Sequence record: MK514281.1
DNA length: 64,000 nucleotides
Strand: one strand, 5' to 3'
In this document: in pieces, positions 21,935 through 58,723 of the stretch
Position numbering within the stretch: the first letter of the stretch is position 1
Layout of the letters: the number at the start of each line of letters is the position of its first letter
Notes under the pieces: model-generated
The model's input: the letters and a program-made list of their open reading frames with translations, nothing else
Databases searched by the model: none
What the model was told of the DNA's origin: nothing
Made by a program: the position numbers and the translations under genes

Positions 21935-22717
21935 GTGTTTGAAATGCTTTTAGGCGGTAGTCCGAACGGGAACTTGCCATTTGGGCAGTTGTTAGCCAAA
22001 ACAACAACAGACTTTACAGTCCCTGCCGGAGTGACCGATATTTCCGGTGTTGCTATCGGTGGCGGCGGCGGGAACTCACGCGGCAATACCATTGGTGGGT
22101 CAGGGGGTGATTTGCGCTGGCGGAATCACATTGCCGTTATTCCAGGTGAAGTGCTGTCACTTATTACCGGTGTGGTAACAGCGGCTGGTAAACCGGGCAC
22201 CTCCAGTAAGATCATCCGTAAGTCAACCGGCGAAGTATTACTGATCGCTAAAGGCGGTGACTCCACCGATGTATCAACGCCGATCAATGGAGCTGATATA
22301 GGTGGAGGGAACGGCGGTGTTGGCACCAATCCATCAGGTGGTGGAGCTGGCGGGTATACCGGCAATGGCGGTAAAGGTGGTTCAGCTGCCGATGTTGACT
22401 CTGGCGGTGGTGGCGGTGGTAGCTCTTATACCTTCAGCGGAAACAGTTTTGGTTGTGGCGGTGGGGGCATCTACCCTAACGGCAAAGGCGCTGATGGTGG
22501 TGCGCCGCCTGTCAATACCGGCAGTCAGGCATTTGGTGGCAGAGGGGGTTCTGGTGGTAATCCTGGTCAAAACACGAATGGGGGCTTATACGGCGGTGGT
22601 GCTGGCGCACCCATTAGGATAACCTATGCAACAACAGGGACTGCTGGCTGCATCCGACTCATTTGGGGTTCAGGTCGCGCCTTCCCAGCTACGAAGACTG
22701 CAGATATTACAGCTTAA
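21935..22717 (+). CDS. Glycine-rich virion fibre/decoration protein (MFEML family)
   Basis: GTG start after GAGGAA; FTVPAGV..IS.VAIGGGG ... IRLIWG.GRAFP. Confidence 0.75.
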   Translation: MFEMLLGGSPNGNLPFGQLLAKTTTDFTVPAGVTDISGVAIGGGGGNSRGNTIGGSGGDLRWRNHIAVIPGEVLSLITGVVTAAGKPGTSSKIIRKSTGEVLLIAKGGDSTDVSTPINGADIGGGNGGVGTNPSGGGAGGYTGNGGKGGSAADVDSGGGGGGSSYTFSGNSFGCGGGGIYPNGKGADGGAPPVNTGSQAFGGRGGSGGNPGQNTNGGLYGGGAGAPIRITYATTGTAGCIRLIWGSGRAFPATKTADITA

Positions 22718-22726
22718 GGACTGATC

Positions 22727-23332
22727 ATGTTTGAAATGTTATTTTGCGGCAAGCCAGCATCAGTTGGCGGCCAACAACTCTTCACTACTGCCGGTACCTT
22801 TAGCTTTGTAGTCCCGGCGGGGATTACTGAGCTCGACGCCTATACTCAAGGTGGTGGCGGTGGTGGCGGTAATGGTAACCCAGGTGTATACAAAGGAGCG
22901 TCAGGCGGCTCTGGCAAAGTAGGTGCTAACGGTTATCTGAACAATATTTCAGTTACACCCGGTGAAACACTGACCGTTATTGTTGGTGCTGCAGGTGCGG
23001 CATTAAAAGCTGGGGAGGCGACCCAATTACTTCGTGGCAGTAACGTGTTACTTGCTGTAGCGGGTGGGGCCGCAGGTGTTACAGCAACTGGCACAAGCAG
23101 TTCTGAGAACAACCTAGGCACTAGCGGTACCGCGGCACCAACGATTCCAGGTAATACCACAACCTACCCTGCTGCAAACAAACGCCCTGGAAGTGGTGGT
23201 AACGGTGGTGCGGGGCGTTACAACGGCGGGGGTGGCATAGTGACCGGACCAGGTATCGCAGGTGGCTGCCGCCTGATGTGGGGTAAAGATCGCGATTACC
23301 CATCAACAGGCGTAGCTGACGTCAAGATGTAA
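22727..23332 (+). CDS. Glycine-rich virion fibre/decoration protein (MFEML family)
   Basis: FVVPAGIT...QGGGGGG ... CRLMWGKDRDYP; paralog of its neighbour. Confidence 0.75.
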   Translation: MFEMLFCGKPASVGGQQLFTTAGTFSFVVPAGITELDAYTQGGGGGGGNGNPGVYKGASGGSGKVGANGYLNNISVTPGETLTVIVGAAGAALKAGEATQLLRGSNVLLAVAGGAAGVTATGTSSSENNLGTSGTAAPTIPGNTTTYPAANKRPGSGGNGGAGRYNGGGGIVTGPGIAGGCRLMWGKDRDYPSTGVADVKM

Positions 23333-23384
23333 ATATGTAAATACTCGCTTTCTTATATAACCCTTCCCTCATTGAGATTGAATT

Positions 23385-23963
23385 ATGGCCAAGATGACTT
23401 TCTATTACGCTTCGATGAACGCCGGAAAATCCACCGCATGCATCCAAGCAGGTTACAACTATTTAGAACGCGGACTGCGGGCCTTGATGATCAAGCCTGA
23501 AGTTGATAACCGCGATGACACAGATAAAGTCAGCTCGCGTGTCGGTCTCAGTGCGAAGGCGGTTGTTTTTGACAGTGAGGTTAATCTAACCGAACTGGTA
23601 TTACACCAGATGAAGACTTCCAAGGTCTCGGTGGTATTGGTTGATGAAGCGCAGTTCCTGACACCGGATCAAGTCAAAGAGCTCAGTGACATCGCCGACT
23701 TCGAAGACATCCCCGTGGTCTGCTATGGTTTGCGTACCGATTTCCAAGGTGAACTCTTTCCTGGGTCTGCAGCCTTAATGGCTCGCTCAGATCGCCTTAA
23801 AGAACTGATCGGTGTTTGCCATTGTGGCAAGACAGCTCACTTCGTACTGCGTCGTGATGACAAAGGTCAGGTGGTGAAAGAAGGCGAGCAAATCCTGATT
23901 GGCGGGAATGACCGCTATGAAGCAGTGTGTCGCAAGCACCATCGCGTGGCCATGCTGAGTTAA
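23385..23963 (+). CDS. tdk: Thymidine kinase
   Basis: YASMNAGKST, VLVDEAQFL, YGLRTDF.GELF.GS, C.CGK.A and IGGNDRY.AVCR.H motifs. Confidence 0.97.
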   Translation: MAKMTFYYASMNAGKSTACIQAGYNYLERGLRALMIKPEVDNRDDTDKVSSRVGLSAKAVVFDSEVNLTELVLHQMKTSKVSVVLVDEAQFLTPDQVKELSDIADFEDIPVVCYGLRTDFQGELFPGSAALMARSDRLKELIGVCHCGKTAHFVLRRDDKGQVVKEGEQILIGGNDRYEAVCRKHHRVAMLS

Positions 23964-23978
23964 GCCTAAGAGGTAGGT

Positions 23979-24695
23979 ATGTTAGAAATGATAATGGCGA
24001 TGCCAAAGGCGTTGATACCTAAAGCCGGTCAGCCGCTGATGGGATTTAACTTTGACCAGGCTAAAAGTATTAGCGCACCGAGTGCAACAGCATACTCCGG
24101 CGGGACGATTGAAACACTTAGCGCCAGTAACGCCCTTGCGGGATATAACCGTAGCTTGCGTTGTAATGGTACGGTGACCAACGTTACCCCGCTGAGCGCA
24201 TTATCAACCCTCGGGCTGGGTGATTTCGCCTTAGAGTGTTACGCCTGGATGACCACAATTCCCAGTACCTATTTCCAACTCTTCCTGCTTCAGTTCGCTA
24301 ACGGCAAATATCTCACCATCCGTGTGGGTGATGGCGGGTACGGTCAGCGCATGCAGGTGGGGATCGATTTAGGCAATGGCGGTAACTACTGCAGTAGCAA
24401 GACTGGCCCTTCATTGCGTAACGGCTGGCATCATTATGCTTTTGTGCGTAAAGCCGGGAAGTGTCGCTTCTTCATTGATGGCCAGCTTCAGTTACTGGCG
24501 CTGGGTACTAGCACCACCTTTAACCTCACTGAGTTTAACGGGAACTTTGATCTGTCGGGTAATTTGAGTTCGTTCGCTATTGGTAAAGCCAACTCCGGCG
24601 CGGGTGATATGTATATGCCGGAATTCCTCTTGTCCAATACCGCACGCTATCAAGAAACCTTTACACCACCTCCCGGCCCTATCTACCGCCCGTGA
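23979..24695 (+). CDS. LamG/concanavalin A-like lectin-domain virion protein (MLEM family)
   Basis: DFALECYAW, WHHYAFVRK.G..RFFIDG and EFLLSNTARY..TFTPP motifs; terminator at 24702-24728. Confidence 0.75.
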   Translation: MLEMIMAMPKALIPKAGQPLMGFNFDQAKSISAPSATAYSGGTIETLSASNALAGYNRSLRCNGTVTNVTPLSALSTLGLGDFALECYAWMTTIPSTYFQLFLLQFANGKYLTIRVGDGGYGQRMQVGIDLGNGGNYCSSKTGPSLRNGWHHYAFVRKAGKCRFFIDGQLQLLALGTSTTFNLTEFNGNFDLSGNLSSFAIGKANSGAGDMYMPEFLLSNTARYQETFTPPPGPIYRP

Positions 24696-24745
24696 CATTC
24701 TGCCAGGGTTTGTCCCTGGCTTTATGCCGTCCAAAGTATCTCAGT

Positions 24746-24764
24746 CCTACATTACCCTTGTGTA
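24746..24764 (+). promoter_or_regulatory. Putative early promoter
   Basis: CCTACATTAC-CCTT-GTGTA. Confidence 0.7.
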
Positions 24765-24817
24765 GAAAACAACATTGTTAACTTAACCTATAGTGTTTTA
24801 GCTGGGAGGTTTTTAAG

Positions 24818-25180
24818 ATGAATCACTTATTATTGGATGTGACAGAGAACGTCGCACCGATCACTCGCCAGTTTACCAACACTGATTGGGATGGCATCTT
24901 GCGTGATGTTAGCTTGTACATCATGCGCCTTTACTGTGCCTCCCAAGTACTTGGCGAACATATTCCTCATAACCCTGCGGCGCACTTAAAGGACATTCAG
25001 TGGCGCTATGGCTTTGACCCGAATGACGGGTCGGTCTCGGTAGAGTTTGTGAAACTGTATAAATGCCTGAGTGATACCATCGGGCTTTATGTGACACAGA
25101 CCAACCCCACTAAACTGTTAACCGTAGTACGTGTTTCAACGGCTAACAATATTTTTCAACTGCACTTAGGATATGCCTGA
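24818..25180 (+). CDS. Hypothetical protein translationally coupled to HslU
   Basis: GGAGG RBS; TGATG overlap with hslU. Confidence 0.7.
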   Translation: MNHLLLDVTENVAPITRQFTNTDWDGILRDVSLYIMRLYCASQVLGEHIPHNPAAHLKDIQWRYGFDPNDGSVSVEFVKLYKCLSDTIGLYVTQTNPTKLLTVVRVSTANNIFQLHLGYA

Positions 25181-26889
25181 TGTCATCATTAACCACCAAT
25201 GAAGTTGTTGAGCATTTAGACCAGTATGTTATTGGTCAGCTGGATGCCAAACGGGCGATCGCACTGGCGTATCGTGAACGAAGCTTGAAAGCGGAAAACA
25301 GCGGAGAAGGCTGGCGTTACATTACCCCCTCTAACATCATGATGGTCGGGCCGTCAGGCAGCGGTAAGACGGAACTGGCTAAGCAGTTAGCGGACATGAC
25401 CAACTCACCTTTTGTGAAGTGCGAAATCACCGAGTTCACACAAGTCGGTTACTACGGGCGTGACGTTAAAACCATTCTGACTGATCTGTTGAAAGAGGCC
25501 ATTCGGATTGCCCCGGAGATCTGGCGGAAAGAAAACAAACCAAAACTCAGTAAAGCGAACCGCGACCTGTTGGCACTGATGCTCAAAGACCCGGAAACGT
25601 TGGATGCCTTTGCTAAAGCGTTGAACATCACTGCTGATAAATGCACCGTGCCGTTTGTGGAAGAGAAACTCCTCAACGGCACCACCCTGCGTAAGCTCAA
25701 TGTGCGTTATGGTTGGCGGGCAAATCCTTTATTGGCAGCCATCGATAAACGGGCGGATAAACCGGAGAAGGGAGAAGAAGAGCCACCAATGGAAGATGCG
25801 GCGGCGTGGACACAGTGGTATGTCCGCACCAAGATGAACTTTAGCAAGCTCGGGTATTCAGGCACTGAAGACAGTCTGGTGAAAGAAGCTGCCCGCGTGT
25901 TAGAAGCGATTCCTATTAAGGATAAGATGGAGCCCGTGCTGATTGAGGTGATTGGCGAAACCCTTAATGAGAAACGCAAAAAGATCATCGCTGCCCGCGG
26001 CGCCAGTCAGCCGAAACTGATTCGTCTGCTGCTGGATGAGAAAGACTACAAAGTCCTGTGCCGTAAGCTACTGGAAACAATGGGTTCCCGACTGTGGATG
26101 AAGCTTGACACTATCATCGATATCGGTGATGCGCTGAATCAAAGCAAGAACCCACCGCCGGACTTCATTGTTAAACTGGTTGAAGAACGTGGCATTGTCT
26201 TCATTGATGAGTTCGACAAGATCTTCCTCGACAGCCGGGGCGAGAACGTCGGTAACATGGGTGTAGTGCGTGACCTGATGCCTTACCTTGATGGGGTCGT
26301 GACTGAAGTCTCTACGGTCAATGAACGTGAGCGGGGTGGTGGGTTATTTGGTGAACGGAACGAGAAGTACATCATCAATACCGCTAATATCCTCTGGATC
26401 GCATCAGGTGCGTTTCATCTCGCTAAGGTGAGTGATGTGCCCGCTGAGATCTTAGGACGTCTCCCAGTGCATGTGAAGCTCAATCGCTTGACTGCAGACG
26501 ATCTGGAAAAGGTACTCATCAAACCCCACGGGTCGATCATTGCGGGTGTCACGCTGCTGATGTCAGCGGAAGGAGCTGAGTTCGTTATTGATGCTGCTGC
26601 GATTCGTGCCATTGCTGATCTGGCGTATGAGTGCAATACCGTCGGTGAGGATACCGGGGCACGTCGTCTGAAAGGCGTCTGCTTCGAGTTGTTCCGCGAC
26701 ATGCTCTATGGCGCATCCAACCTATTACCTGACCAAAAGAAAGTGCACTTCACCGCAGAGCAAGTAATGGCTGAGCGTGAACGCATTCTGGCGACTGTTG
26801 AACGCCGTAAAGAAAAACCCAAAGAAACCGACCCTGCTCAGCGCTTTGCAAAAGCCATGAAAGAGCTTGGGGCTTTGGTTAACAATTAA
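25180..26889 (+). CDS. hslU: HslU-like AAA+ ATPase/unfoldase
   Basis: LDQYVIGQ.DAKRAIA, ITPSNIMMVGPSGSGKTE, EFTQVGYYGRDV, IVFIDEFDKI, ILWIASGAFH, GRLPVHV.L and GARRL motifs. Confidence 0.92.
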   Translation: MSSLTTNEVVEHLDQYVIGQLDAKRAIALAYRERSLKAENSGEGWRYITPSNIMMVGPSGSGKTELAKQLADMTNSPFVKCEITEFTQVGYYGRDVKTILTDLLKEAIRIAPEIWRKENKPKLSKANRDLLALMLKDPETLDAFAKALNITADKCTVPFVEEKLLNGTTLRKLNVRYGWRANPLLAAIDKRADKPEKGEEEPPMEDAAAWTQWYVRTKMNFSKLGYSGTEDSLVKEAARVLEAIPIKDKMEPVLIEVIGETLNEKRKKIIAARGASQPKLIRLLLDEKDYKVLCRKLLETMGSRLWMKLDTIIDIGDALNQSKNPPPDFIVKLVEERGIVFIDEFDKIFLDSRGENVGNMGVVRDLMPYLDGVVTEVSTVNERERGGGLFGERNEKYIINTANILWIASGAFHLAKVSDVPAEILGRLPVHVKLNRLTADDLEKVLIKPHGSIIAGVTLLMSAEGAEFVIDAAAIRAIADLAYECNTVGEDTGARRLKGVCFELFRDMLYGASNLLPDQKKVHFTAEQVMAERERILATVERRKEKPKETDPAQRFAKAMKELGALVNN

Positions 26890-26904
26890 CCCTCTGGAGT
26901 TGTC

Positions 26905-27444
26905 ATGGACCACAATACCGCTCTTTGTACGTTAAACCCGAAAGTCTTGATTCAGAATGAGTTGTATCGCTTCATTCGTCTGTACGCTTTGTTTAATGGC
27001 TTGGATGTCCACGATGTGAAAGCAATAACCAAGAAGATCAATTCTGGCGATTGTGGTCTGGCGGCAATTACCGTGCACCACCTGCTAAAAGAAAAGTACA
27101 AACTGGATACGGATATCCTGATGTGTCGTAATCACTGCTGGCTGGCTTATCACGAAGGTGAATACGACACGGCCTTTCCCAGCGGCTACACGAAACGGGT
27201 GGTGGAGGTCTGGGATGGAAGCCCGGATGAGCCTGTCCACTATTTAACCTTTCAGGAAGCGTGTGATGAATGGATGCCGATGGATGTCAAAGGGGCTTAC
27301 ATTGTGAAAGCCTTCTGTGCCATCACGTGGACACAGTTTCCCAAAGAGCTTCAGCATTGCTTAGACAATGCGGACGAATATGAGATGCCGGGTATTGCAG
27401 CGCAGTACGAGGCGAAATGTAAATTTGTCACTGACAACATGTAG
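26905..27444 (+). CDS. Putative papain/transglutaminase-like Cys-His-Asp protein
   Basis: NSGDCG.AA / HCW / EYD motifs; paralog of 18743-19471. Confidence 0.5.
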   Translation: MDHNTALCTLNPKVLIQNELYRFIRLYALFNGLDVHDVKAITKKINSGDCGLAAITVHHLLKEKYKLDTDILMCRNHCWLAYHEGEYDTAFPSGYTKRVVEVWDGSPDEPVHYLTFQEACDEWMPMDVKGAYIVKAFCAITWTQFPKELQHCLDNADEYEMPGIAAQYEAKCKFVTDNM

Positions 27445-27451
27445 GTGGATT

Positions 27452-27991
27452 ATGTCTGACGTTATCGTTATTCCTCGTTTAAGTGTAGTAAAAGGCGGAT
27501 CGTATCAGCAGGTCAGTGGCGGTGTGTTGGCGCAGCTGCGACTTATCCTTGGGCCGGATATCCGCAACGTTGTGTTGCATGGTGCCCAGCGCAGTCATGC
27601 TAAGTTGTTAGTGGATGCCCTGCGGGCAGAGTACGAGCCCTTTGGTGTGACGCTGCAGTTCAATGCCAAGCCGCTGTATGACACGCTGGACATCAGCTGG
27701 CCAGACAGTGATGCGGTGACGATCCTAACCCTTCGCCCTGAAGAGTTTGATGTCGAAGCGCCGTTACGTCTGAGTCATGATACCCATATCGTGGTTATCA
27801 GCACCAAACCGATCCTGACCACCCAATTGCTCAATCTCTACGACCATGCCGTTATGAGCGGTGTGCACGTTACACTGTTCACCACTGGGTATGTTCCAGC
27901 CGGGATCGTGTTGCTTGAGCCGTTGGAAGGGTTTGTTTATCAGCCGATGATTGACAACGTTATCAAGACACGGGCGATGGCACACGTGTAA
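27452..27991 (+). CDS. Hypothetical protein
   Basis: AGGTGG RBS before ATG at 27452. Confidence 0.7.
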   Translation: MSDVIVIPRLSVVKGGSYQQVSGGVLAQLRLILGPDIRNVVLHGAQRSHAKLLVDALRAEYEPFGVTLQFNAKPLYDTLDISWPDSDAVTILTLRPEEFDVEAPLRLSHDTHIVVISTKPILTTQLLNLYDHAVMSGVHVTLFTTGYVPAGIVLLEPLEGFVYQPMIDNVIKTRAMAHV

Positions 27992-28084
27992 TTGGCGACA
28001 TAATCTGCTGTTTATATGTTAACCGGCCTCCTGGTTATTCCGGGAGGCTTTTATAGCAGCATTCATTTTTTATCGAGGTTGGGT

Positions 28085-28435
28085 ATGGTTGGTATTGGCT
28101 TATCTGTCTGCTTTCGTTTACGTGCAGAAGAAGTCGACCCTTTCTTGGTGGGGGTGTGTAATTACGATGTCCTGATCACCGAGGAACGGGTGCCCAGTTT
28201 ATTGAAAGAGCTGGAGGGGATGTATAAGCGGGTGATGTATCGTTACGATCATCAGTGTGATTTCAAACTGGAAGGTAACCTGCTGGAGATCGTGTTGCCG
28301 TTTCACCCTAACCCGTTCGAAGGAAAGCTCGCACCGGCAATCACCGTGCGCATCCCTAAAGATGTGAACTATGCGGTGAACGGTTGTATGAAAGAAACCC
28401 ATGAAGTGTTGTATCCGCTGACCAAAGCAGCTTAA
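28085..28435 (+). CDS. Hypothetical protein
   Basis: GAGG RBS before ATG at 28085. Confidence 0.65.
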   Translation: MVGIGLSVCFRLRAEEVDPFLVGVCNYDVLITEERVPSLLKELEGMYKRVMYRYDHQCDFKLEGNLLEIVLPFHPNPFEGKLAPAITVRIPKDVNYAVNGCMKETHEVLYPLTKAA

Positions 28436-28447
28436 AGAATTTATAAA

Positions 28448-28466
28448 CCTACATTACTCTCGTGAT
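28448..28466 (+). promoter_or_regulatory. Putative early promoter
   Basis: CCTACATTAC-TCTC-GTGAT. Confidence 0.7.
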
Positions 28467-28494
28467 GTAAGATAATTAACTAAGTGGGTGCATT

Positions 28495-29112
28495 ATGGCC
28501 TGGAATGGGTATGTCCTGGAATTCTTGGGCAATGACCTCGGGAAGTATTACCTAGGAATCAGTAACATCGATGCTAAGCAGCAAGATGAGTTGATGCTTG
28601 CAGCATTGCGTGCCGGTGGTCCTGCGCTACCAGTAGAAATCCAAACAGCCTATAAACAGATGGCTGAGAAAGAAGTCTTGCTGTTTACCCATGTTCCGTT
28701 TAATGCGGAGTATGCGGTTGTGGAAGCCTGGCAGAATGATCACATTCATGCACAGTCTCTGAAAGCACGTCGGTTTCGATTCCCGAGTCATCGACGAGAG
28801 ACACTGTTCCAATGTATCAATGCCGAACAGATTGTCAGTAAGATAAAGCAATTACGCAGTCGAGTGACCGTGCAAGCCGGTATCCGTTTTGATGGCTTTT
28901 ATCATCCACAACTGATGATGACTGACCAACAATGGGTGCAGGAGCTGGAGATGCTCAATCAACTGCAATCGCTTTATTATTATCTGGGCGATTTCATTGA
29001 GTTCTTTGATGAAGAGTTCAAGGAGTTCAAAGGCACCGAAAGTGTCAAGGCGTTACCGTACCGCAATCCGTATTTCATCAACTTAGGATTGCAGTTAAGT
29101 CAGATGTGTTAA
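28495..29112 (+). CDS. Hypothetical protein
   Basis: First ORF after an early promoter motif. Confidence 0.75.
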   Translation: MAWNGYVLEFLGNDLGKYYLGISNIDAKQQDELMLAALRAGGPALPVEIQTAYKQMAEKEVLLFTHVPFNAEYAVVEAWQNDHIHAQSLKARRFRFPSHRRETLFQCINAEQIVSKIKQLRSRVTVQAGIRFDGFYHPQLMMTDQQWVQELEMLNQLQSLYYYLGDFIEFFDEEFKEFKGTESVKALPYRNPYFINLGLQLSQMC

Positions 29113-29164
29113 CCCTCCTACCTTGGCCTATCATGGCCGCTTACTAAAGCAAAGAGAGATTACC

Positions 29165-29794
29165 ATGAATATCATCAACACTGTATGTGAACTGACCAAC
29201 ATCTCCATCGCCATCAGCATCACCCATGATGAGGAGGTGAACTCCACCCTGGTGGCATTGGATATCAACAATGTCCCGTTCTTCAGCTACCAGTGGGGTC
29301 AGGTAACCAAAGGTCAGCGTAAAGTCCAGCTGGGTGCTACAAGCCATGGCCTGAGTGCGTTGTATCTGCACCTGCATCACAATGTCATCGACAGCCATAA
29401 CACCGACATCGCCCAGTGTTATCTCACCAACCGGGATGAGATCTTAGCCGTCGTGCGAGACCTGGGTGTGATCTTCAATGGCACTGAGTGGATTGAGAAA
29501 CTCGATATCTCGCATTACCGTCTGGCAATCGAAGAGCAGTTCCCAGGGGAAACCAAAGCAGTGATGGTGCTGACCAGCAAGGGTGATGAACACCGTGCGG
29601 CGTACACTTTCACTGCTAACAATTTAGGTGACCTTATGGGGACCGGGATCAAGCGGGGTGAGACGGTGGTGCTAAGCGGACATAACAGCCGGTTTGTTCA
29701 CGACTACGCATCCACTGTAGTGCCGCCTCAGATCAGCGATGTTATCAGCAGTCATGCCGATACATTGAAAGCCCGTTTTCCGGCGTTAGTTTAA
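29165..29794 (+). CDS. Hypothetical protein
   Basis: AGAGAG RBS before ATG at 29165. Confidence 0.7.
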   Translation: MNIINTVCELTNISIAISITHDEEVNSTLVALDINNVPFFSYQWGQVTKGQRKVQLGATSHGLSALYLHLHHNVIDSHNTDIAQCYLTNRDEILAVVRDLGVIFNGTEWIEKLDISHYRLAIEEQFPGETKAVMVLTSKGDEHRAAYTFTANNLGDLMGTGIKRGETVVLSGHNSRFVHDYASTVVPPQISDVISSHADTLKARFPALV

Positions 29795-29827
29795 TCTCCC
29801 CTTTTCCTTCTATTTAGAGAAACCGTT

Positions 29828-31441
29828 ATGCACATTCAAGATATGACCTTCCGCATTCACACAACTATAAGTTCGCGTGACGATCTGGATAACGTTGTTC
29901 GCCTGGTCAATCAAAATGATGAGGTGATTATTGAACACGCACTTCATGACGCCATGCTGCCTGTCATTTATCAAAACGATAAACTGGCTGCTGCGTATTT
30001 GGCGGTGGTTTACATGTACACCCGCGACATGCCAGAAGGACAAGGTGCGGCAACGTATGACTTCCATCGTACGGCTGGCATTATCCTGGATCAGTTTGTA
30101 GAAGACAGTAACCTGGGTGAGTTCGAAGCAGATGACTGGGGTCAGATTGAAGTGATGGTACCCAACCTACCAGAAGGGGTGCGGGCCTTTGTACATACCA
30201 CCGATGGGTCTGATGTGAACATCCGTATCTATCGCCAAGACCGCGGTCTGGTGAATGAGCGTCTGTTTACCTACAGCGATGAAGAGACGGTTCCTTCTAT
30301 TGAAGAGATGCTTGCGCAGTGGGATGCTGATATTGTCCCTGCCGCAGATCCGGTACAGGAAAACGCAGCCAGCATCTCGTTTGGTGACGTCTCCTTTATT
30401 TACACCCTGGACATGAGCAAGGAAGGGCGCGAGCAACGTAAAGCTATCATGCAGGTGGTAATTGGTGATCGCCTGGTGGCACAACATAAAGTCCATGAGA
30501 ACACCCAACCGCTCATGTATTACATGATGGAAGTGTTCAACATGCTGGCGCTGCGCATGACCGTGGGTCCGGTAGAAGGCATTAACGCTCAAGACCGGGT
30601 AACCTTACTGACGGCTATCAGCGGGTTTGTGGGCGGGCATTTAGCGATGCCAGATCAGGTGCAGATCGCAGAAGGTATGCAGTACATGCACGAAGGTGCG
30701 ATCAGTGATGAGGTAACCTACATGGTTTCACATCAGTTGATTGCTGACAACCATCTGCGGGCGACCTACCAGTTCAATACCGTGGTCGATGAAACGATGC
30801 GTCGTTCAATCACCATGTGTGATGAAGTGAGCTACCTGGAAAACCCGATGAGTCCACAGGCGTTCTTCAATGCGTATCAGGCAGACCTCAGCCGTGAGCT
30901 GAAACTGTCTCGGATGTTTGACATCGCAATGATTGCGGCCATCGATCGCGGTCAGGGTCTCGGTAAAGATAACGAACTGCTGTATCGTATCAAAGAAGAC
31001 ATGAAGTACTTCAAAGAGATGACACTCCATTCACCGGTGATCATGGGACGGAAAACGTATGAGTCGTTACCGAATCCGTTGGTAGATCGCCTGAACATCG
31101 TTATCACTACCGCCCCGACCAACACCTATACCACCCGCTCAGGCGTGGTGTTCGTCAACAGCAAAGAAGAAGCCCTGCTGCACGCGAAGGGTTATCTGGC
31201 TGAACATGGCGGTGATAAGATCTGGATTATCGGGGGTGCGAGTATCTATGCTGCATTCCTGCCGGATGCCAAAGAGATCCACCTGACCACCATCGGTACT
31301 GAACGTGAAGATGCTGATACGTTCTTCCCGGAAGTTGATCTGCGTCAGTTTAACGCTGCACGTCAGTTTGAAGAAGACCAGGTGTTCGAGCGTGAAGGTG
31401 AAACCTTTGGCTACAACCGTGTCATCCTGACCCGTAAGTAA
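29828..31441 (+). CDS. Fusion: about 360-aa unknown N-terminal region plus C-terminal dihydrofolate reductase
   Basis: C-terminal IAAID..QGLGKDNELLYRIKEDMKYFK, VIMGRKTYESLP, WIIGGASIY and ADTFFP motifs; continuous frame. Confidence 0.9.
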   Translation: MHIQDMTFRIHTTISSRDDLDNVVRLVNQNDEVIIEHALHDAMLPVIYQNDKLAAAYLAVVYMYTRDMPEGQGAATYDFHRTAGIILDQFVEDSNLGEFEADDWGQIEVMVPNLPEGVRAFVHTTDGSDVNIRIYRQDRGLVNERLFTYSDEETVPSIEEMLAQWDADIVPAADPVQENAASISFGDVSFIYTLDMSKEGREQRKAIMQVVIGDRLVAQHKVHENTQPLMYYMMEVFNMLALRMTVGPVEGINAQDRVTLLTAISGFVGGHLAMPDQVQIAEGMQYMHEGAISDEVTYMVSHQLIADNHLRATYQFNTVVDETMRRSITMCDEVSYLENPMSPQAFFNAYQADLSRELKLSRMFDIAMIAAIDRGQGLGKDNELLYRIKEDMKYFKEMTLHSPVIMGRKTYESLPNPLVDRLNIVITTAPTNTYTTRSGVVFVNSKEEALLHAKGYLAEHGGDKIWIIGGASIYAAFLPDAKEIHLTTIGTEREDADTFFPEVDLRQFNAARQFEEDQVFEREGETFGYNRVILTRK

Positions 31442-31495
31442 TTTAACCCCCGGGGAGGCAACTCCCCATTCTTGTTTATAAAGGAAACATTTCTC

Positions 31496-32128
31496 ATGGC
31501 GATTGAAAAAGCAGCAGTACCGGCAAACGTAGTTGAAATCACTGGCAAGACCCTGGAACAAGCTCGTGGTGATATCCCGAACGCTATCATGTTACTGGAC
31601 AGCAATACGGTCGATGTGCGCTACACCCCGGCATTCAATAAACTGCCTGCTGATCTGCAACACGTCATCCTGGTTGCACAGACCGGTAACCCGGTGATCT
31701 CATTAGAGCGCCCACTGGATGCGACCGGAAAGGTTGATGCAACCAACCCGAACATGGTGATTGCCGCGGCAGTGCAGCAAGATGGCCAGCCACTGGGGAT
31801 CTATCATCCAGCCTTGATGGGTCGTCTGCGTCAGATTCCAAATGGCTATCTGCTTTATACCCACTATCACACTAACAGCAAAGCAGACTTCTCTTATCCG
31901 GCGTTTGAGAAAGCCTTGGCGGAATATTGCATGCTGGCGTTTGCGTTAGGTACGAAAGAGCAACCGGTGGTAATTAACATGCCCGGTCTGCAATGTGCCA
32001 ATAGCTTCGTCTGGGAAGAGGTCAACGGTGAACGTGTCCCAACACTGAGCCCGCGTCATCTTGAGCGTGTGAAAGAAGTGATTGCTAACACCATGTTCGC
32101 CGGGTCAACTGTTTATCTGGTGTTGTGA
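31496..32128 (+). CDS. Hypothetical protein, possibly a degenerate macro domain
   Basis: C-terminal Y.HY....FSYPAFEKAL...INMPGLQC...WEEV resembles Poa1p-type macro motifs; AAGGA RBS. Confidence 0.4.
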   Translation: MAIEKAAVPANVVEITGKTLEQARGDIPNAIMLLDSNTVDVRYTPAFNKLPADLQHVILVAQTGNPVISLERPLDATGKVDATNPNMVIAAAVQQDGQPLGIYHPALMGRLRQIPNGYLLYTHYHTNSKADFSYPAFEKALAEYCMLAFALGTKEQPVVINMPGLQCANSFVWEEVNGERVPTLSPRHLERVKEVIANTMFAGSTVYLVL

Positions 32129-32319
32129 TGAAAGCGTGTCCGCTCTGTGCTTCATCGGCTAAGACCTACAAATACGCGTTAGTGTTCTGGGGTGTGCGTT
32201 GTACCAGTTGCATGCTGTTCCTCAAAGATATGAACACCTCTGAGGCAGCGGCTATTCGTCAGTGGGATACACGCATTACCCCCGAAGAGAAAGCAGCAAA
32301 GAAACGCAAGAAAGCTTAA
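32125..32319 (+). CDS. Lar-family (restriction alleviation-like) zinc-finger protein
   Basis: CPLC...VRCTSC....EAAAIRQWDTR. Confidence 0.65.
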   Translation: MMKACPLCASSAKTYKYALVFWGVRCTSCMLFLKDMNTSEAAAIRQWDTRITPEEKAAKKRKKA

Positions 32320-32340
32320 CCCCTGGATAAAGGAGTCGTC

Positions 32341-32655
32341 GTGCTGAAAAGAACAGTACTGAGTTTGGTCACCTGCTTTATGCTATCGGGCTGCGGAATG
32401 GCAGAATCCGAAGATGTGCCGGTCAAATCGGTTGAGGGTGTTGTGATCAGCGATGAGGTCTGTCAAGTCGGTCAAAAGTGCGAGGCAGTGATTGCCCGCG
32501 ATCAAACCGCCTGGACATACCAGATTGCAGAAGGGCCTTTTAAGAAAGGCACGGTGCTTTATAAAGCGTGTGCATATCACCGTACACACGAGCGCTGCAG
32601 TTCGGTCTGGTCACCCACTCCCGATCGGTTTATTCCGCCGGAGTCAAAGAACTAA
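32341..32655 (+). CDS. Predicted lipoprotein
   Basis: Lipobox LSGC; AAGGAG RBS. Confidence 0.7.
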   Translation: MLKRTVLSLVTCFMLSGCGMAESEDVPVKSVEGVVISDEVCQVGQKCEAVIARDQTAWTYQIAEGPFKKGTVLYKACAYHRTHERCSSVWSPTPDRFIPPESKN

Positions 32656-32715
32656 GTTGTAACCACGGCGTGTCATGCGCCGTTTTAATTTAACCCTGCT
32701 GTAAGGTAATTCACC

Positions 32716-33804
32716 ATGAAAGACTCAGAACACCAAGATACTACAATTGATAATGTCTCTCAGTATGCGGGAGAACTGGCGGACCTGATTGAAGAGTTTG
32801 TGGCAGACCGATTTACCTTAATGGATGATGCTGTTCTTGAATCCCTTTATGCCGACTTACCGGATGTCACCTATTTGAAAGGTGTGGTGAAAGGCTTACG
32901 TCGAAACCTGATGCGACAGGCAGCATCGATCAATGTCGAAGACGCATACCCGAAAGTTATGATGTTTAAAGAACAACCGTTAACTGCGGAGAATGTCAGA
33001 GAGATTATCCAGACTGATTGTCCGGATTTGCCGGCGGATGAAGTTACACAAACCGTAACAGAAGTCATGCTGGCAACTGATGAAGACGACGATGACGATA
33101 ACAGCGAAGCGCTGCGTCTACGGGAAAGCAACAAACCCGAACATATCCCAAGCCTTGATGAACTGATGCAAGCGGAGGGGAAAGGTTGGGGTTCGGTGAG
33201 TGCGGTGACCACACCCCCGCCAGTCATTGAACCTGCTCGTCCTGCAAGACCCTCACGCGCTGAACGCTTTGGTACCTCAAACGTTGAGTTAGCTGAATTA
33301 CTGAGTCAGGCCAAGCCGGGCAGTGTGTTCTCTATTGACACCATTAAATCTGCAAAAGATAAAAACCTGGTGTTGGTGAAATCGCCCGAGACAAAACACT
33401 TTGAACCCCTGCGTCTGTTAGAGCGTTCTGATCCGCAATATTACCAATACATGTGGCCAGCATTATTCGAAGCCCTGGAGGCTGTGTTGAATGACACAAG
33501 CTTAACGGTGAATCGGATGCGTCGTCTGGATGAAGAGATGCTTGCACGCTTTGGTGATACCTTAGCTGCCGCGGTCACGACTATCCTGAGTATTGGTAAT
33601 CACGATCTGTTGATTAAAGAGAACGTCAACTATTTCATGCAGCAGTGTAATGACCGTGGACTGGATATCAAACTCTATATGGGTGCTAAGGTTTATAAGC
33701 AAGGTCGCTGGATTAACACCTGGATCGACGCAACATTACAAACCCCTAAAGGCAAGTTTATCTTTGGTACCCCGGAGGTGGATGTGGTATGGCAAGCGAA
33801 ATGA
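32716..33804 (+). CDS. Hypothetical acidic protein
   Basis: 362-aa ORF, AAGGT RBS. Confidence 0.75.
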   Translation: MKDSEHQDTTIDNVSQYAGELADLIEEFVADRFTLMDDAVLESLYADLPDVTYLKGVVKGLRRNLMRQAASINVEDAYPKVMMFKEQPLTAENVREIIQTDCPDLPADEVTQTVTEVMLATDEDDDDDNSEALRLRESNKPEHIPSLDELMQAEGKGWGSVSAVTTPPPVIEPARPARPSRAERFGTSNVELAELLSQAKPGSVFSIDTIKSAKDKNLVLVKSPETKHFEPLRLLERSDPQYYQYMWPALFEALEAVLNDTSLTVNRMRRLDEEMLARFGDTLAAAVTTILSIGNHDLLIKENVNYFMQQCNDRGLDIKLYMGAKVYKQGRWINTWIDATLQTPKGKFIFGTPEVDVVWQAK

Positions 33805-34106
33805 TTGAATGGGAAAAGCTCTTTAACTCGCTAAAGGCGATTGAACAAAGCGACCAGGTCTGTGATTTACCGACGCGCAATCTGTCGGTCATGATGGCAC
33901 AGCGGCGCCTCAAGGCTGGATTGCAACGCTCAGTGAAACGGGTGGACGCGATCATGAGCGCACAGGTACAAACCGACGAAGCGTACGATGAACTGATGCA
34001 TCGACTGCAAGTGCTGGCATTGCCTGTCACTGTGACGCGCTTTACCGGTGGGAAGTGGAATCATGGAGTGATCAGAACCAAGAAAGGTACGATCATGTAT
34101 GGTTAG
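33789..34106 (+). CDS. Hypothetical protein
   Basis: Overlaps both neighbours; true start may be 33801. Confidence 0.55.
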   Translation: MASEMIEWEKLFNSLKAIEQSDQVCDLPTRNLSVMMAQRRLKAGLQRSVKRVDAIMSAQVQTDEAYDELMHRLQVLALPVTVTRFTGGKWNHGVIRTKKGTIMYG

Positions 34107-34419
34107 AAATAACGTTGTCTCTATTTATAAACCGACGTTTCGTAAACGTCTCGCTGTCGACCCGATGGTAGTCATCACCGAGTTGCAGCATGTCTTTACA
34201 GTGATTGAACTGTGTAAAGCATCTAACAAATATGACCATCGTGTGTATGGTAAATTGCTGAAAGATGAGGTACAATTAGTTCGTGACTGTGCAGCGGTGC
34301 TTGTACGACATGTGCAGACACCATCCATCGTGCAGATGTTGCAAACCGCAATTACCCACGAGAAGCCGGTTGAGTTGATTGCAGCCCGACACGGTGAGTT
34401 TTTACAATTGATAAATTAA
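34099..34419 (+). CDS. Hypothetical protein
   Basis: Overlapping ORF in an operon-like run. Confidence 0.6.
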   Translation: MVRNNVVSIYKPTFRKRLAVDPMVVITELQHVFTVIELCKASNKYDHRVYGKLLKDEVQLVRDCAAVLVRHVQTPSIVQMLQTAITHEKPVELIAARHGEFLQLIN

Positions 34420-34445
34420 CCCCTGAGTATAAGGAAAATAAAAAT

Positions 34446-34736
34446 ATGGCTAAGAAGATTACCGCAGCAGCTTTAGAGAAAGACATCTTTGATCACGAAG
34501 GCATCCGTGTCATCTTCCGTGTACCAACTGGTAAGCGCATTGCTGAACAGAAATACACTGAAGTCTTCACGAATCGTTCGCCAAAGAACTACACGTTAAA
34601 AACCTTACGCGAACGCATTGTCCGTGTGGTGGGTGAGAACATTGAGTTCTCCATCATCACAGGCGGCGGTGAGATCGCAAACGGCAATTACAAGATCGGT
34701 AACTTACGCACCACCTACGAAGTAATCGAAGAGTAA
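34446..34736 (+). CDS. Small conserved-type hypothetical protein
   Basis: AAGGA RBS; EGIRVIFR...RI...I.G.G...GNLRTTY pattern. Confidence 0.7.
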   Translation: MAKKITAAALEKDIFDHEGIRVIFRVPTGKRIAEQKYTEVFTNRSPKNYTLKTLRERIVRVVGENIEFSIITGGGEIANGNYKIGNLRTTYEVIEE

Positions 34737-34741
34737 TAGAC

Positions 34742-34782
34742 GGCATAAGAGGAGGAGCAAACGCTCCTCCTCTGTTTATGCT
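34742..34782. terminator. Bidirectional terminator with the TTATGC motif on both strands
   Basis: GGCATAA-GAGGAGGAGC-AAAC-GCTCCTCCTC-TGTTTATGCT between convergent genes. Confidence 0.88.
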
Positions 34783-34791
34783 GCTTTTTTT

Positions 34792-35631
34792 TTATCCTGC
34801 GACCACAGTCTGGTCGGCAGTTAATGCAGAAGGGAAGCTTCGACCTTTACCCCAGATGATACGAATCCCGCCTGTACCTGGCGTGTAACCAGAACCCATC
34901 CCGGCACCACCACCGTATCGTCCACCGGTGCCGCCATTTGCGGCAGTGCCTGCAGACCCGGCTTTACCAAACTGCGTAATTGTACCGCCTGCTCCGGACG
35001 TGCTACCGATTGAGATATCCCCACTGGCACCTTCACCGTAGAGGCCAACACCCCCACCACCGGCGCCATAACGGTTACCGTTATAAGACCAACCAGCACC
35101 CCCACCACCGCCACCTCCTTTACCGGCCTGACCGTCCACTGTAGGACAGCCACCCATTCCGCCATCACCGGAGTAACCACCCGCGCCACCGCCACCGTTA
35201 TTGGTGCCGGCAGTCTGTCCACCCAACCCACCGTTTCCACCACCGAGAAGAGGTAGACTAATGGGGGTACTGGTGCTGGTCGAATCACCACCCCTGGCTA
35301 GCAACAAGACCGTATTGCCCCTTAAGAGTTTACTGTCGTTGCCGGTCATGTCACCAACGACCAGGGTCAGAACTTCACCCGGGGTCACTTTCAAACGGTT
35401 GACATAACGTAGATCACCACCACGCGCACCGATATGAGGTGTACCGGTAAGTCCTTTGCCACCCGAGCCGACAGCCACAGCACAGATATCAAACACACCG
35501 GCAGGTACCGTCCAAGAGGTGGTTCCGCTGGTTGCAAATATCTGCTGACCTACCGCAGTGGTGTCACTATCCGGTAACGGACCTCCCCCGGATACTGGTC
35601 GGTAACTTGAGTTCAGTAACAGTTCAAACAC
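34792..35631 (-). CDS. Glycine-rich virion fibre/decoration protein (MFELL family)
   Basis: GTG start after GGAG; WTVPAGV..GGDLRY..TPGEVL ... GGIRIIWGKGRSFP; paralog of 21935-22717. Confidence 0.78.
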   Translation of the reverse strand: MFELLLNSSYRPVSGGGPLPDSDTTAVGQQIFATSGTTSWTVPAGVFDICAVAVGSGGKGLTGTPHIGARGGDLRYVNRLKVTPGEVLTLVVGDMTGNDSKLLRGNTVLLLARGGDSTSTSTPISLPLLGGGNGGLGGQTAGTNNGGGGAGGYSGDGGMGGCPTVDGQAGKGGGGGGGAGWSYNGNRYGAGGGGVGLYGEGASGDISIGSTSGAGGTITQFGKAGSAGTAANGGTGGRYGGGAGMGSGYTPGTGGIRIIWGKGRSFPSALTADQTVVAG

Positions 35632-35640
35632 GGTAACTCC

Positions 35641-37764: not shown

Positions 37765-37843
37765 AAATGCCCCTTAGGAAAGTTAAATCATACTAATGTG
37801 ATCTATAAAATAACGTGCGATATAGAATCTATATTTTTACATA

Positions 37844-37862
37844 CCTACATTACGGTAGTGAT
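37844..37862 (+). promoter_or_regulatory. Putative early promoter, divergent from the helicase gene
   Basis: CCTACATTAC-GGTA-GTGAT. Confidence 0.7.
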
Positions 37863-37969
37863 ATGTTGTACAACATAAAACATATTAGTTGGGTATACTA
37901 AAGTTTTATTAGATCCACTACACTTTCGAATAGTGTTTTAGTATACAACCAACAACTTGGAGGTCCACT

Positions 37970-38041
37970 ATGGATCGTTTAATCATTTTCACCGGGGTAA
38001 TCGTTACATTCGTCATTAGCATTGCGATGACTGTGACGTAA
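37970..38041 (+). CDS. 23-aa hydrophobic peptide, not in the ORF track
   Basis: MDRLIIFTGVIVTFVISIAMTVT; GGAGG SD about 6 nt upstream; structured leader. Confidence 0.6.
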   Translation: MDRLIIFTGVIVTFVISIAMTVT

Positions 38042-38057
38042 CACAAAGGAGAGGGTT

Positions 38058-38471: not shown

Positions 38472-38485
38472 AGGGTTTGACAATA

Positions 38486-39061: not shown

Positions 39062-39118
39062 GTTCTCGTAATCGGCTGGGCGGGTGAGTATCACCGCCTG
39101 GCTTTCCAGGAGTCTATT

Positions 39119-39619: not shown

Positions 39620-39631
39620 AGGAATCAGTAG

Positions 39632-53984: not shown

Positions 53985-53993
53985 GGATGCAAC

Positions 53994-55741: not shown

Positions 55742-55763
55742 GAGGCCTCCAGAATAATTCACA

Positions 55764-55782
55764 CCTACATTATCTAGGTGAT
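55764..55782 (+). promoter_or_regulatory. Putative early promoter (variant)
   Basis: CCTACATTAT-CTAG-GTGAT. Confidence 0.65.
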
Positions 55783-55806
55783 CGTAGTGTATTAAAAGGA
55801 ATCGTT

Positions 55807-56337: not shown

Positions 56338-56348
56338 GGAGTTATCAG

Positions 56349-56813: not shown

Positions 56814-56885
56814 AGACGATACTATAGAAGATGGGACTTCGGTCCCATCGCTATTCCCTTCTTTTTTTTTTGTTGAGGTTTGATC

Positions 56886-57956
56886 ATGGCTGGAGTGGAT
56901 ATTGGGCAATCGATTCAAAACTCGATTAAGGCAGCAGGTTCAGTAACAACCAACGCCGTGAACAAAGTTCAATCAACTTTTGTCGGAGGCGTGAAAGAAG
57001 ACCTGGCATTAATCGATGCCAAAGCGAAGTCAGCGGTACAAACCCTGAACTCGTTTAAAGATACCCAGATTGGTGCTATCGATGGCTTTATTAAGAAAGT
57101 CTCCGGGGGTGCGCTCAGCATCTCTGAACTCTCGAGCATCATCGATGTACGTAATGGCATCAGCATTGACTACCAGCGCCTCTATCGTCGCTTAGGGGAC
57201 GCGGCGGGTTTCCCGATGGATTCAATCATTGGGATGACGGCTGATCTTAAAATGGAAGTGGCGAATCTCCTTGATGCCTATTCCAGCAAGAACTACACCT
57301 ACCTGCTTAATAAAGCCGGGGTGAAGATCGGGGTCAATGACTCGAGCTATCAAGCGGCACAGTTGATTGCTGGTGTGATCAGTAAGATGTCCAAGTCGGA
57401 CTCTGACTTTAATACCATGGTGGATGAAGCAGCGCAACTGGCGTTGTTAAATGTCATGGTGCGTAATGCGGTGCAGGTCGGACTCTGGTCGGGGATTGAT
57501 ACCTTACTGGGTCAGTACACCGATAAAGCAGCTGGGATCACCAATCTGGCGACCTGTGCCCAGATCTCAATTCGGGGTGGGGATGTCTTTACCACCAAGT
57601 ACATCATTGACACCGTCGGGATTGCGCGGGTCACTGCACTGAACACCGATTTCCTGACTGACATGTTACGCTACTTTAAGTTCAAGAGTGATGTGACTGC
57701 GGATCAGTACGCGAACTACCTGGCAACGTTGACTTACTGTTTACAGCAGGCCGAAGCGGATTGGGCGTATATGCAGTTCGGTACAGTACGGGCATTGCGG
57801 TTAAAGCCGTTCACCAATGCGTCAACGGATGCGATCACTCTGTTCCAGCATACTGACGAATACCGTCAGCACGTCATGATTGCCCGGACTTATCCACCCC
57901 GTGATCTGATGGATTTACTGAAACAGAATTACCCGTACATGGCTGTCGTGCAATAA
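56886..57956 (+). CDS. Putative virion (baseplate/tail) protein
   Basis: GAGGT RBS; adjacent to the tail module. Confidence 0.55.
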   Translation: MAGVDIGQSIQNSIKAAGSVTTNAVNKVQSTFVGGVKEDLALIDAKAKSAVQTLNSFKDTQIGAIDGFIKKVSGGALSISELSSIIDVRNGISIDYQRLYRRLGDAAGFPMDSIIGMTADLKMEVANLLDAYSSKNYTYLLNKAGVKIGVNDSSYQAAQLIAGVISKMSKSDSDFNTMVDEAAQLALLNVMVRNAVQVGLWSGIDTLLGQYTDKAAGITNLATCAQISIRGGDVFTTKYIIDTVGIARVTALNTDFLTDMLRYFKFKSDVTADQYANYLATLTYCLQQAEADWAYMQFGTVRALRLKPFTNASTDAITLFQHTDEYRQHVMIARTYPPRDLMDLLKQNYPYMAVVQ

Positions 57957-57958
57957 CC

Positions 57959-57995
57959 AACATAAGGAGAGGGCCAGCGCCCTCTCCTCTATGCC
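57959..57995. terminator. Bidirectional terminator with TATG motifs on both strands
   Basis: AACATAA-GGAGAGGGC-CAGC-GCCCTCTCC-TCTATGCC. Confidence 0.85.
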
Positions 57996-58006
57996 GTCTT
58001 TCTTTT

Positions 58007-58723
58007 TTATGCCGACCCTATTAGCTCTAACACTGGGCGCCAATGCATATTGCTAGCGGTATAATTTTTGTTAGTATTACCGCTTTTGGTAACAGCGCTG
58101 TACGGTCCAATGTTGTTACTTGTGACGTTGACTTGTGTTTCCTGACACTGTATAAGTGTCGAGGATACAGCTAAGTTGATCGAAGCCCACTTTTCCCCTG
58201 ACTCAGTTTGCGCGGCAGTAGTCTCGCTGGCAATATGGAACATGGTGCGACCCCATTCTGATGTTTTCTCAATCGCATTAGGGGGGTAGGCCAATGGGTC
58301 TGCTAAACCACATTTTGGTAATCGTACCAGAAACTTATAACCAAGAAAGGTGATGGTCTTATTCTGCGGCACTAATGGCGTTGCTGGGTATGGGTATTTG
58401 CCCGGCCCTGCGATGCCATACACCATCCCTTTGGCATACAGCTGCTCCCAACTACACGAATTTATCATAGTGGCAGTAGGAATGAACAAGATTTTACCAT
58501 CAACAACAAACTTCGCCCATGTGACGCCGCTGTTATATACGGTCCCATTGTTAAAACCGGTTAAGGAGCGTAGCGTTGCAGTATCTATAAACTGGCTAGG
58601 TGGGATCGTGCCGTAATATCCGGTTTCATACCCTGGACTGGGATTGTAATAGTTGAGTAGGGTTGCTGGACCCGGTCCAGTACCCACTAACTTTTTCCCA
58701 CCAAAAAATAACATTTCTAACAT
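58007..58723 (-). CDS. phiKZ gp131-family-like virion protein (MLEML family)
   Basis: GPGP..L, GYYG.I...FI, G..YN....WAKF..DGKILFIP and SWEQLY..G.VYG motifs. Confidence 0.65.
   Translation of the reverse strand: MLEMLFFGGKKLVGTGPGPATLLNYYNPSPGYETGYYGTIPPSQFIDTATLRSLTGFNNGTVYNSGVTWAKFVVDGKILFIPTATMINSCSWEQLYAKGMVYGIAGPGKYPYPATPLVPQNKTITFLGYKFLVRLPKCGLADPLAYPPNAIEKTSEWGRTMFHIASETTAAQTESGEKWASINLAVSSTLIQCQETQVNVTSNNIGPYSAVTKSGNTNKNYTASNMHWRPVLELIGSA

Follow-up and report, generated by a model that had tools for sequence, protein, structure and literature searches.

We analyzed a 64,000-nucleotide stretch of the genome of Erwinia phage Rebecca (hereafter the window; record MK514281.1, bases 62001-126000) and found that proteins with unrelated, adhesin-type bodies begin with the same short N-terminal peptide, which we call the tag. 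Rebecca is a 273.7-kb jumbo myovirus (Agricanvirus, RAY/Ea35-70 group) that belongs to the nucleus-forming, phiKZ-like phages, and a megablast search with window positions 20000-40000 matched Rebecca at 100% identity and eight other Agricanvirus phages and Ea35-70 at 96-98.5%. The tag is real, restricted to protein N-termini and under selection at the protein level; it sits on unrelated folds, marks genes that vary between strains, and is conserved across genera of phiKZ-like phages. We put the probability at roughly 60% that it serves as a short docking peptide for interchangeable accessory adhesins. The tag family, its breadth among phiKZ-like phages and the number and diversity of its cargo per genome appear undescribed so far: a full-text literature search with the tag strings returned no relevant paper, and the tag is not mentioned in the portions of the phiKZ and Goslar structure papers available to us. 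The docking-peptide principle itself is already known from Klebsiella and SP6-type podophages (PMC6872550, PMC13352976).

A first-pass annotation of the window had described five scattered proteins sharing an N-terminal M[FL]E[ML][LI], and all five N-termini are found in the sequence (MFEMLLGG, MFEMLFCG, MLEMIMAM, MFELLLNS and MLEMLFFGG). Five proved to be an undercount, as Rebecca encodes 10-11 tagged proteins. A genome-wide scan for start codons with [FL]E[ML][LIFM] directly behind them placed four further strict tags outside the window, in gp51, gp284, gp285 and gp320, and a paralogue search added the variants gp70 (MMELFLGG) and gp286 (MIGLLLNK). The strict pattern ^M[FL]E[ML][LI] is found nine times in Rebecca, against 0.038 occurrences expected in 320 genes from the phage’s own amino-acid composition (Poisson probability about 5e-19). 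Not one of the 1,892 internal methionines starts a match, and when an extended pattern, [FL]E[MLI][MLIF][LMIVF]x[GAS], was sought in six-frame open reading frames (ORFs) of at least 80 amino acids, eight of the ten matches lay directly after a start codon. Altogether ten Rebecca genes, most tagged genes being scattered along the genome, start M-[L/F/M]-E-[M/L]-[L/I/F]-[L/M/F]-x-G, and an eleventh, gp286, carries a degenerate copy. This glycine-rich paralogue carries a decayed tag without the otherwise invariant Glu3, while an AH06 protein of its BLAST cluster retains MIELFLNT. Across 51 tags, curated from a scan of ORF starts in six whole genomes, the consensus is M1, L/F2, E3 (50/51), M/L/I4, L/M/I5, L/M6, G/A7, G8, G/K9 and P/G/K10. 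The tag is thus about 8-10 residues long, M-x-E-h-h-h-G/A-G, rather than the roughly six first proposed.

The five tagged genes of the window encode different kinds of small domain. On the plus strand, gp112 (21935..22717, 260 amino acids, GTG start) has its tag MFEMLLGG in codons 21935-21958, ahead of a TNF-like and glycine-rich (PF21722) fibre-tip body; gp113 (22727..23332, plus strand, 201 amino acids, ATG start) joins the tag MFEMLFCGK to a glycine-rich PF21722 body and falls in phrog_11737, ‘minor tail protein’; and gp115 (23979..24695, plus strand, 238 amino acids, ATG start) joins MLEMIMAMPK to a LamG/concanavalin-like lectin domain (PF13385, 33.9 bits against a gathering cut-off of 27.6). 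On the minus strand, gp131 (34792..35631, 279 amino acids, GTG start), downstream of the virion-associated helicase gene gp132, carries MFELLLNS before a glycine-rich body (phrog_4474, 9e-103), and gp162 (58007..58723, 238 amino acids, ATG start) carries MLEMLFFGGKK, a linker, a GPGP junction and a probable C-type-lectin-like body. PF21722 scored 36.6 bits in gp113, 24.3 bits in gp112, exactly at the cut-off, and 17.4 bits (E 0.005) in gp131, below the cut-off, yet gp131 is a clear paralogue. Foldseek matched the gp112 model to the solved fibre of cyanophage Pam3 (7ypx_A, E 8e-6), tail-tip chains of mycobacteriophage Bxb1 (9d93, E 4e-4) and also the ALK/LTK glycine-rich domain. Of the first-pass annotation, the three glycine-rich bodies and the LamG lectin hold, but the description of the gene starting at 58723, gp162, as gp131-like does not.

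For gp162 and its paralogues gp70 and gp320, both also tagged, we rejected kinship with phiKZ gp131: tblastn and phmmer against phiKZ matched gp83 only, and no propeller is predicted. All three belong to PHROG families annotated ‘virion structural protein’ (for gp162, phrog_1062/3589). A Foldseek comparison of the gp162 model with the PDB gave nothing at E below 0.001. In an exhaustive structural search, the list of matches was dominated by C-type-lectin-like domains at Z 4-6.7, among them the Legionella Lcl C-domain (Z 6.7), CD72 (5.5), a fibre-tip domain of Bdellovibrio (5.2), TvpA (5.2) and Mtd, the tropism determinant of a Bordetella phage (Z 4.1), suggesting that the gp162 body probably has a C-type-lectin-like fold. 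Elsewhere in the genome, gp51 gives a weak Kelch match, family comparison with Pfam and PHROG assigned no fold to gp284 or gp285, and an ESM Atlas look-up gave no usable lead for the gp284 body. The tagged bodies fall into five unrelated families: TNF-like plus glycine-rich tip, LamG, a probable C-type-lectin-like family, Kelch on a weak match, and one of unassigned fold.

Predicted structures leave the tag free. The AlphaFold model of gp112 has a mean predicted local distance difference test (pLDDT) of 91 and a predicted template modelling score (pTM) of 0.89, with residues 1-9 below 50 and the body beginning at about residue 17; that of gp162 has a pTM of 0.82, with residues 1-11 below pLDDT 50 and a one-turn helix at residues 3-6, within the tag. 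In neither model does any other N-terminal stretch fall below pLDDT 50, and the prediction leaves the tag unpacked against the body of either fold, which argues against an intramolecular role. The one-turn helix would also suit a scheme in which tags bundle with one another into mixed oligomeric fibres, after the phiKZ gp131-type hetero-hexamer model and with no separate receptor protein, as phiKZ fibres are built of six paralogous N-terminal segments with a six-helix bundle (PMC13250141). We consider bundling distinctly improbable, because six hydrophobic residues are insufficient for a stable bundle, the tag is followed by Gly/Pro-rich linkers with no heptad or helical region, and phiKZ has two tagged proteins only.

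Tagged genes come and go as whole units between near-identical phages. Rebecca-type and RAY-type phages are 97-98% identical and differ by three indels in the window, two of which are whole tagged genes. The first, 22718..23353, is a 636-bp segment corresponding to gp113, present in Rebecca and lacking from RAY-type phages; blastn of window positions 20001-40000 against RAY breaks exactly at 22717/23354. The second, 58009..58848, is a self-contained 840-bp cassette that holds gp162 together with an upstream region and a terminator hairpin of its own. Six phages have it (Rebecca, Deimos-Minion, MadMel, Desertfox, Bosolaphorus and Mortimer), all with a gp162 protein of 100% identity, whereas RAY, Simmy50, Special G and Ea35-70 lack both cassette and protein. 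Cassette borders fall outside the genes and not at the tag.

The cassette behavior of entire tagged genes, together with the A/U-rich codons at their starts (ATG TTA GAA ATG TTA), could be taken to mean that the conserved start is a feature of RNA or translation, such as an A/U-rich initiation region or a recombination seam, with the peptide as a by-product. Recombination at the tag itself is hard to square with where the cassette borders lie, and the codons point the other way as well: between copies they vary freely at synonymous positions (TTA/CTC/CTT/TTT; GAA/GAG; ATG/TTA/CTG) while the amino acids stay constant, indicating that conservation acts on the peptide and not on the DNA. Moreover, Glu3 is invariant in all but one of the curated tags, the DNA upstream of the tags is unconserved between copies, and the tag is confined to adhesin-type genes. 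A nucleic-acid explanation is therefore highly improbable.

The earlier annotation had named start codons lying elsewhere as a way in which the tag could fail, and the evidence agrees with starts at the tag: a Shine-Dalgarno-like GAGG/AGGA lies 6-12 nucleotides 5′ of each of the five window starts, and independent gene calls in metagenomic orthologues also begin there. The Rebecca record places the starts of gp112, gp51 and gp285 a few codons 5′ of the tag; the tag ATG of gp51 is the annotated start in MadMel, and gp112 begins at its tag GTG in the RAY record and in metagenomic orthologues, nine codons downstream of the start in the Rebecca record. Upstream of gp112, GAGGAATC occurs twice in window positions 21885-21934 and each copy is followed by a GTG (21908 and 21935), a duplication that accounts for the different gp112 starts in the Rebecca and RAY records. 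Both GTG starts reported earlier (21935 and 35631) are present in the sequence. The warning that annotation tools could miss a tag behind such a start holds for gp112, which is mis-annotated in the Rebecca record, but not for gp131.

The tag extends well beyond the Agricanvirus group. A degenerate DNA version of the pattern gave 19 matches in Salmonella phage SA002 against 3 for a reversed control, and curation left SA002 with 15 tagged genes, Erwinia phage pEa_SNUABM_37 with 13, AH06 with seven, Pseudomonas phage Noxifer with three and phiKZ with two; PhiEaH1 and Serratia phage PCH45 have two each. The same scan of ORF starts in the Goslar and SPN3US genomes found no tagged gene. The 51 curated proteins fall into about nine clusters unrelated by BLAST and several singletons. 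Metagenomic homologues of three body families, the gp162, glycine-rich and LamG types, also carry the tag. Examples of the gp162 type are MLECMLGG, MLEMLLLGG and MLEALASSG, and among the short LamG-type homologues drawn from 1.84 billion representative proteins, about 25 of 37 start M-x-E-h-h-h by eye, and a strict pattern flags 10. In three phages, tagged genes adjoin the DNA polymerase gene: gp284-gp286 in Rebecca (L006:4378-6520), gp83 in phiKZ (L120:2348-3862) and tagged genes of SA002 (L007:1868-3684). This flank, which borders structural genes, looks like a conserved insertion hotspot.

What stands in the tag’s place on related proteins is informative. PhiEaH1, Noxifer and SPN3US have arrays of paralogues in which the gp162-type body begins at a conserved (S/T)GPG(P/N) junction, and before that junction stands either the tag with a short linker or an FN3-like domain of about 85 residues. 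In SPN3US, three proteins carry a gp162-type body behind a DUF7941 (PF25613) N-module, and a fourth carries a gp285-type body behind the same module (E 2e-11). Metagenomic fusions join DUF7941 to Gly_rich_2 in one protein and DUF7936 to a glycine-rich domain in another. The Goslar structure paper shows that virions contain DUF7941 proteins in very large amounts and that these assemble head-to-tail into filaments, for which it proposes anchoring at the peripheral baseplate; some bear sugar-binding domains C-terminal to the module (10.64898/2026.04.21.720040). The tag therefore sits where a virion-anchoring module sits on the same kinds of cargo, which is the strongest indirect argument for an anchoring role, and the swap with DUF7941 makes the baseplate periphery or the filament network the likely site. 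PF25613 was detected by Pfam in none of nine tagged proteins scanned; Rebecca gp8, gp9 and gp11 contain it, as does SPN3US gp145. By phmmer, the numbers of DUF7941 paralogues and tagged genes are 12 and 0 in SPN3US, 7 and 0 in Goslar, 5 and 11 in Rebecca, 5 and 7 in AH06, 5 and 15 in SA002, and 5 and 13 in pEa_SNUABM_37. Across these genomes, paralogue number runs opposite to tagged-gene number.

Functional evidence comes from phiKZ, whose two tagged proteins, gp83 and gp298, carry the annotation ‘virion structural protein’ and have their RefSeq starts at the tag. A transposon-mutagenesis preprint reports that gp298, a Kelch-domain protein of low abundance in the virion, is encoded far away from the tail genes, that phiKZ can do without orf298 on PAO1, where an orf298::Tn mutant adsorbs normally, and that the same mutant does not adsorb to two wild P. 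aeruginosa isolates (bioRxiv 10.1101/2025.11.23.690004). This is the behavior expected of a plug-in accessory adhesin, and docking through the tag would explain how gp298 controls adsorption on wild hosts from a locus so far from the tail genes.

The other phiKZ protein points elsewhere, as the RefSeq note for gp83 reads ‘structural head protein’ and not tail. The N-terminal peptide might then be a head-targeting or packaging signal that brings its passengers into or onto the capsid instead of the tail. Such signals have a precedent: the internal proteins IPI-III of T4 share a roughly 10-residue N-terminal capsid-targeting sequence that takes them inside the head and that the prohead protease cleaves. 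Rebecca gp320, too, lies directly after the major capsid gene. We nonetheless think head targeting unlikely. Lectin and fibre-tip cargo makes little sense within a head, gp298 works in adsorption, gp83 is absent from the proteins modelled in the phiKZ capsid, and the phiKZ head protease, which we take to cut after S/A/G-x-E, would not fit a tag beginning M-[L/F]-E. The likeness to the T4 sequence thus lies in a peptide of similar length and position common to unrelated passengers; the adhesin-type cargo of Rebecca sets the two apart, and so may the want of a match to the presumed protease site. Tagged proteins may decorate the capsid’s exterior.

Besides the gp83 note, several observations weigh against docking at the tail. 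The capsid and whole-virion structures of phiKZ include a model of neither gp83 nor gp298, and no tagged protein appears in the portions consulted of the table from mass spectrometry of crude RAY/Deimos-Minion lysates. The tags of Rebecca were read from gene sequences, and the evidence for the lectin-like fold of gp162 is moderate, with Z below 8. No significant resemblance between the tag and DUF7941 N-termini or linkers was found with a scoring matrix compared against other ORFs. A phyletic screen for proteins found in each of the five genomes with the tag but in neither Goslar nor SPN3US passed gp72, a fragment resembling an RNA-polymerase subunit, and gp304, a collagen-like fibre, only; this screen is weak, as collagen low-complexity repeats may inflate the gp304 matches and as it rests on a single tag-less clade in which Goslar and SPN3US perhaps represent one loss. 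No docking partner emerged from the screen. In the phiKZ and Goslar structures, the peripheral or outer baseplate is still mostly unmodelled (PMC13250141; 10.64898/2026.04.21.720040).

We also found no statistical support for the idea of the tag as what is left of the first DUF7941 helix or as a mimic of the DUF7941 linker. The idea arose from likenesses noticed by eye, ‘SMELLCQ’ in SPN3US and ‘GVLEMPE’ in the gp9 linker, and the scoring matrix built from the 51 tags gave a Mann-Whitney p of 0.86.

The large tail-fibre gene gp304 (Rebecca record 253953-258788; L006:27953-32788) encodes a collagen-like protein with eight collagen stretches and is flanked by gp305 (DUF7941 N-module only), gp303 (DUF4376) and gp302 (DUF7941 C-domain only). 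In SA002, Noxifer and PCH45, a tagged gene lies directly after the homologue of gp303, itself next to a collagen-like fibre gene. As DUF4376 is presumably a protein family of the tail-fibre-assembly (chaperone) type, this order suits an alternative in which the tag is recognized by an assembly chaperone or sorting factor during morphogenesis and is not itself a structural joint. The need of Pam3-type fibre tips for a chaperone favors the same idea (PMC9608196). We judge it rather improbable, as the tagged bodies have very different folds, of which LamG, Kelch and C-type-lectin domains normally fold by themselves, and most tagged genes are scattered at a distance from any chaperone gene. Furthermore, in phages without the tag the same position is occupied by structural anchors (DUF7941, FN3-like) and not by chaperone sites.

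Under the docking-peptide reading that we favor, M-[L/F]-E-[M/L/I]-[L/M/I]-[L/M]-[G/A]-G-(G/K)-(P/K) would serve phiKZ-like jumbo phages as a portable attachment tag at the N-terminus, with a short flexible linker behind it and, behind that, any one of many small ligand-binding domains unrelated to each other. The exposed hydrophobic stretch and the invariant Glu3 would plug into a shared site at the tail periphery, likeliest the peripheral baseplate or the network of DUF7941 filaments and fibres, so that a single virion could display mixed, easily exchanged accessory adhesins that widen or tune host adsorption. Of the plug-in receptor-binding system envisaged in the first-pass annotation, the modular adhesin-type cargo, the tag left free in models, the cassettes, the adsorption phenotype of gp298 and the module fusions all argue in favor, and we infer physical docking and the identity of the docking site from them. 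A bolder version is that the tag is the plug of a new display system, in which one acceptor site, repeated on a ‘cloud’ of DUF7941 filaments and fibres at the baseplate periphery, accepts any M-x-E-h-h-h-G-G start; we hold this version only tentatively. If true, the virion would display a dozen or more lectin-type adhesins in combinations that can be exchanged quickly, and an 8-residue tag could hang foreign proteins on jumbo phages.

The closest parallels to such an arrangement are in podophages. In the Klebsiella phages KP32, K11 and KP34, and also in SP6/K1-5-type phages, secondary receptor-binding proteins carry a conserved N-terminal docking peptide, which fits into a T4gp10-like branching domain on the primary receptor-binding protein (PMC6872550; PMC13352976). 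As in Rebecca, a very short N-terminal peptide replaces an anchor domain and the genes are swappable modules, and the host-binding protein on the tail is exchangeable, as is proposed for Rebecca too. The Rebecca tag is unrelated in sequence, however, and in these jumbo myoviruses a single tag serves 10-15 proteins in a genome, whose non-enzymatic lectin-type folds number at least five. A T4gp10-like acceptor did not turn up in Rebecca, where no search was aimed at it.

Two further systems resemble the tagged proteins in their cargo. DUF7941 filament proteins occur in the same phage group with the same kinds of cargo, and three Rebecca body families are fused to DUF7941 elsewhere (two in SPN3US and the glycine-rich family in a metagenome), so that tagged and DUF7941 proteins probably belong to the same host-recognition apparatus. 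They differ in that DUF7941 is a module of roughly 150 residues against about 10 for the tag, and the tagged proteins scanned are without it. Pam3 gp24 recognizes its receptor through a TNF-like and glycine-rich part, while a distinct helical domain at the N-terminus docks the fibre to the baseplate (PMC9608196). Gp112, gp113 and gp131 share this TNF-like and glycine-rich receptor-binding architecture. Unlike Pam3 gp24 and the T-even/S16 gp38 adhesin, which likewise has a glycine-rich receptor-binding tip, gp112 has an 8-residue tag in place of the N-terminal helical docking domain; its model predicts no N-terminal trimerizing helical domain, only a 9-residue low-confidence tag before the body.

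Several other features of the window were noted. Co-regulation of the tagged genes by a late promoter was rejected: CYYYTTATGCCG occurs 5′ of gp51, gp112, gp286 and gp320 but also before many non-structural genes, and so does not discriminate tagged genes. A C/T-rich motif with TTATGC(C/T), typically CTCCTCTTATGCCG, which precedes the same four tagged genes and many non-structural ones, is present in about 70 copies in the genome by a loose pattern, mostly intergenic, oriented along the direction of transcription and often directly after a GC hairpin such as GGCTTCGGCC. In the window it lies at 2174, 4239, 14975, 17789, 20143, 20836, 21882 and 24721, and on the minus strand at 34749, 44689 and 49133, with about 60 more copies genome-wide; it has the look of a signal for the phage’s own RNA polymerase that joins terminator and promoter. 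The HNH endonuclease gene gp90 lies directly 5′ of the ribonucleotide reductase beta gene gp91 (9257-11243), which is a typical position for a homing endonuclease. Lastly, gp123 (29828-31441), annotated ‘dihydrofolate reductase’, is 537 amino acids long, far above the normal length of that enzyme, and contains a 150-bp indel relative to RAY (29859-30009).

The tag offers a way into host recognition by phiKZ-like jumbo phages. The simple rule that a protein starts M-x-E-h-h-h-G-G picks out candidate accessory adhesins in any genome of this kind: gp83 and gp298 in phiKZ, and 10-15 to a genome among the Erwinia and Salmonella phages. It also narrows the hunt for the docking site to a one-peptide problem. 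Among phages for fire blight biocontrol, the tag marks the genes that set nearly identical isolates apart. Should docking be confirmed, the tag would provide a minimal handle for protein display on jumbo phages.

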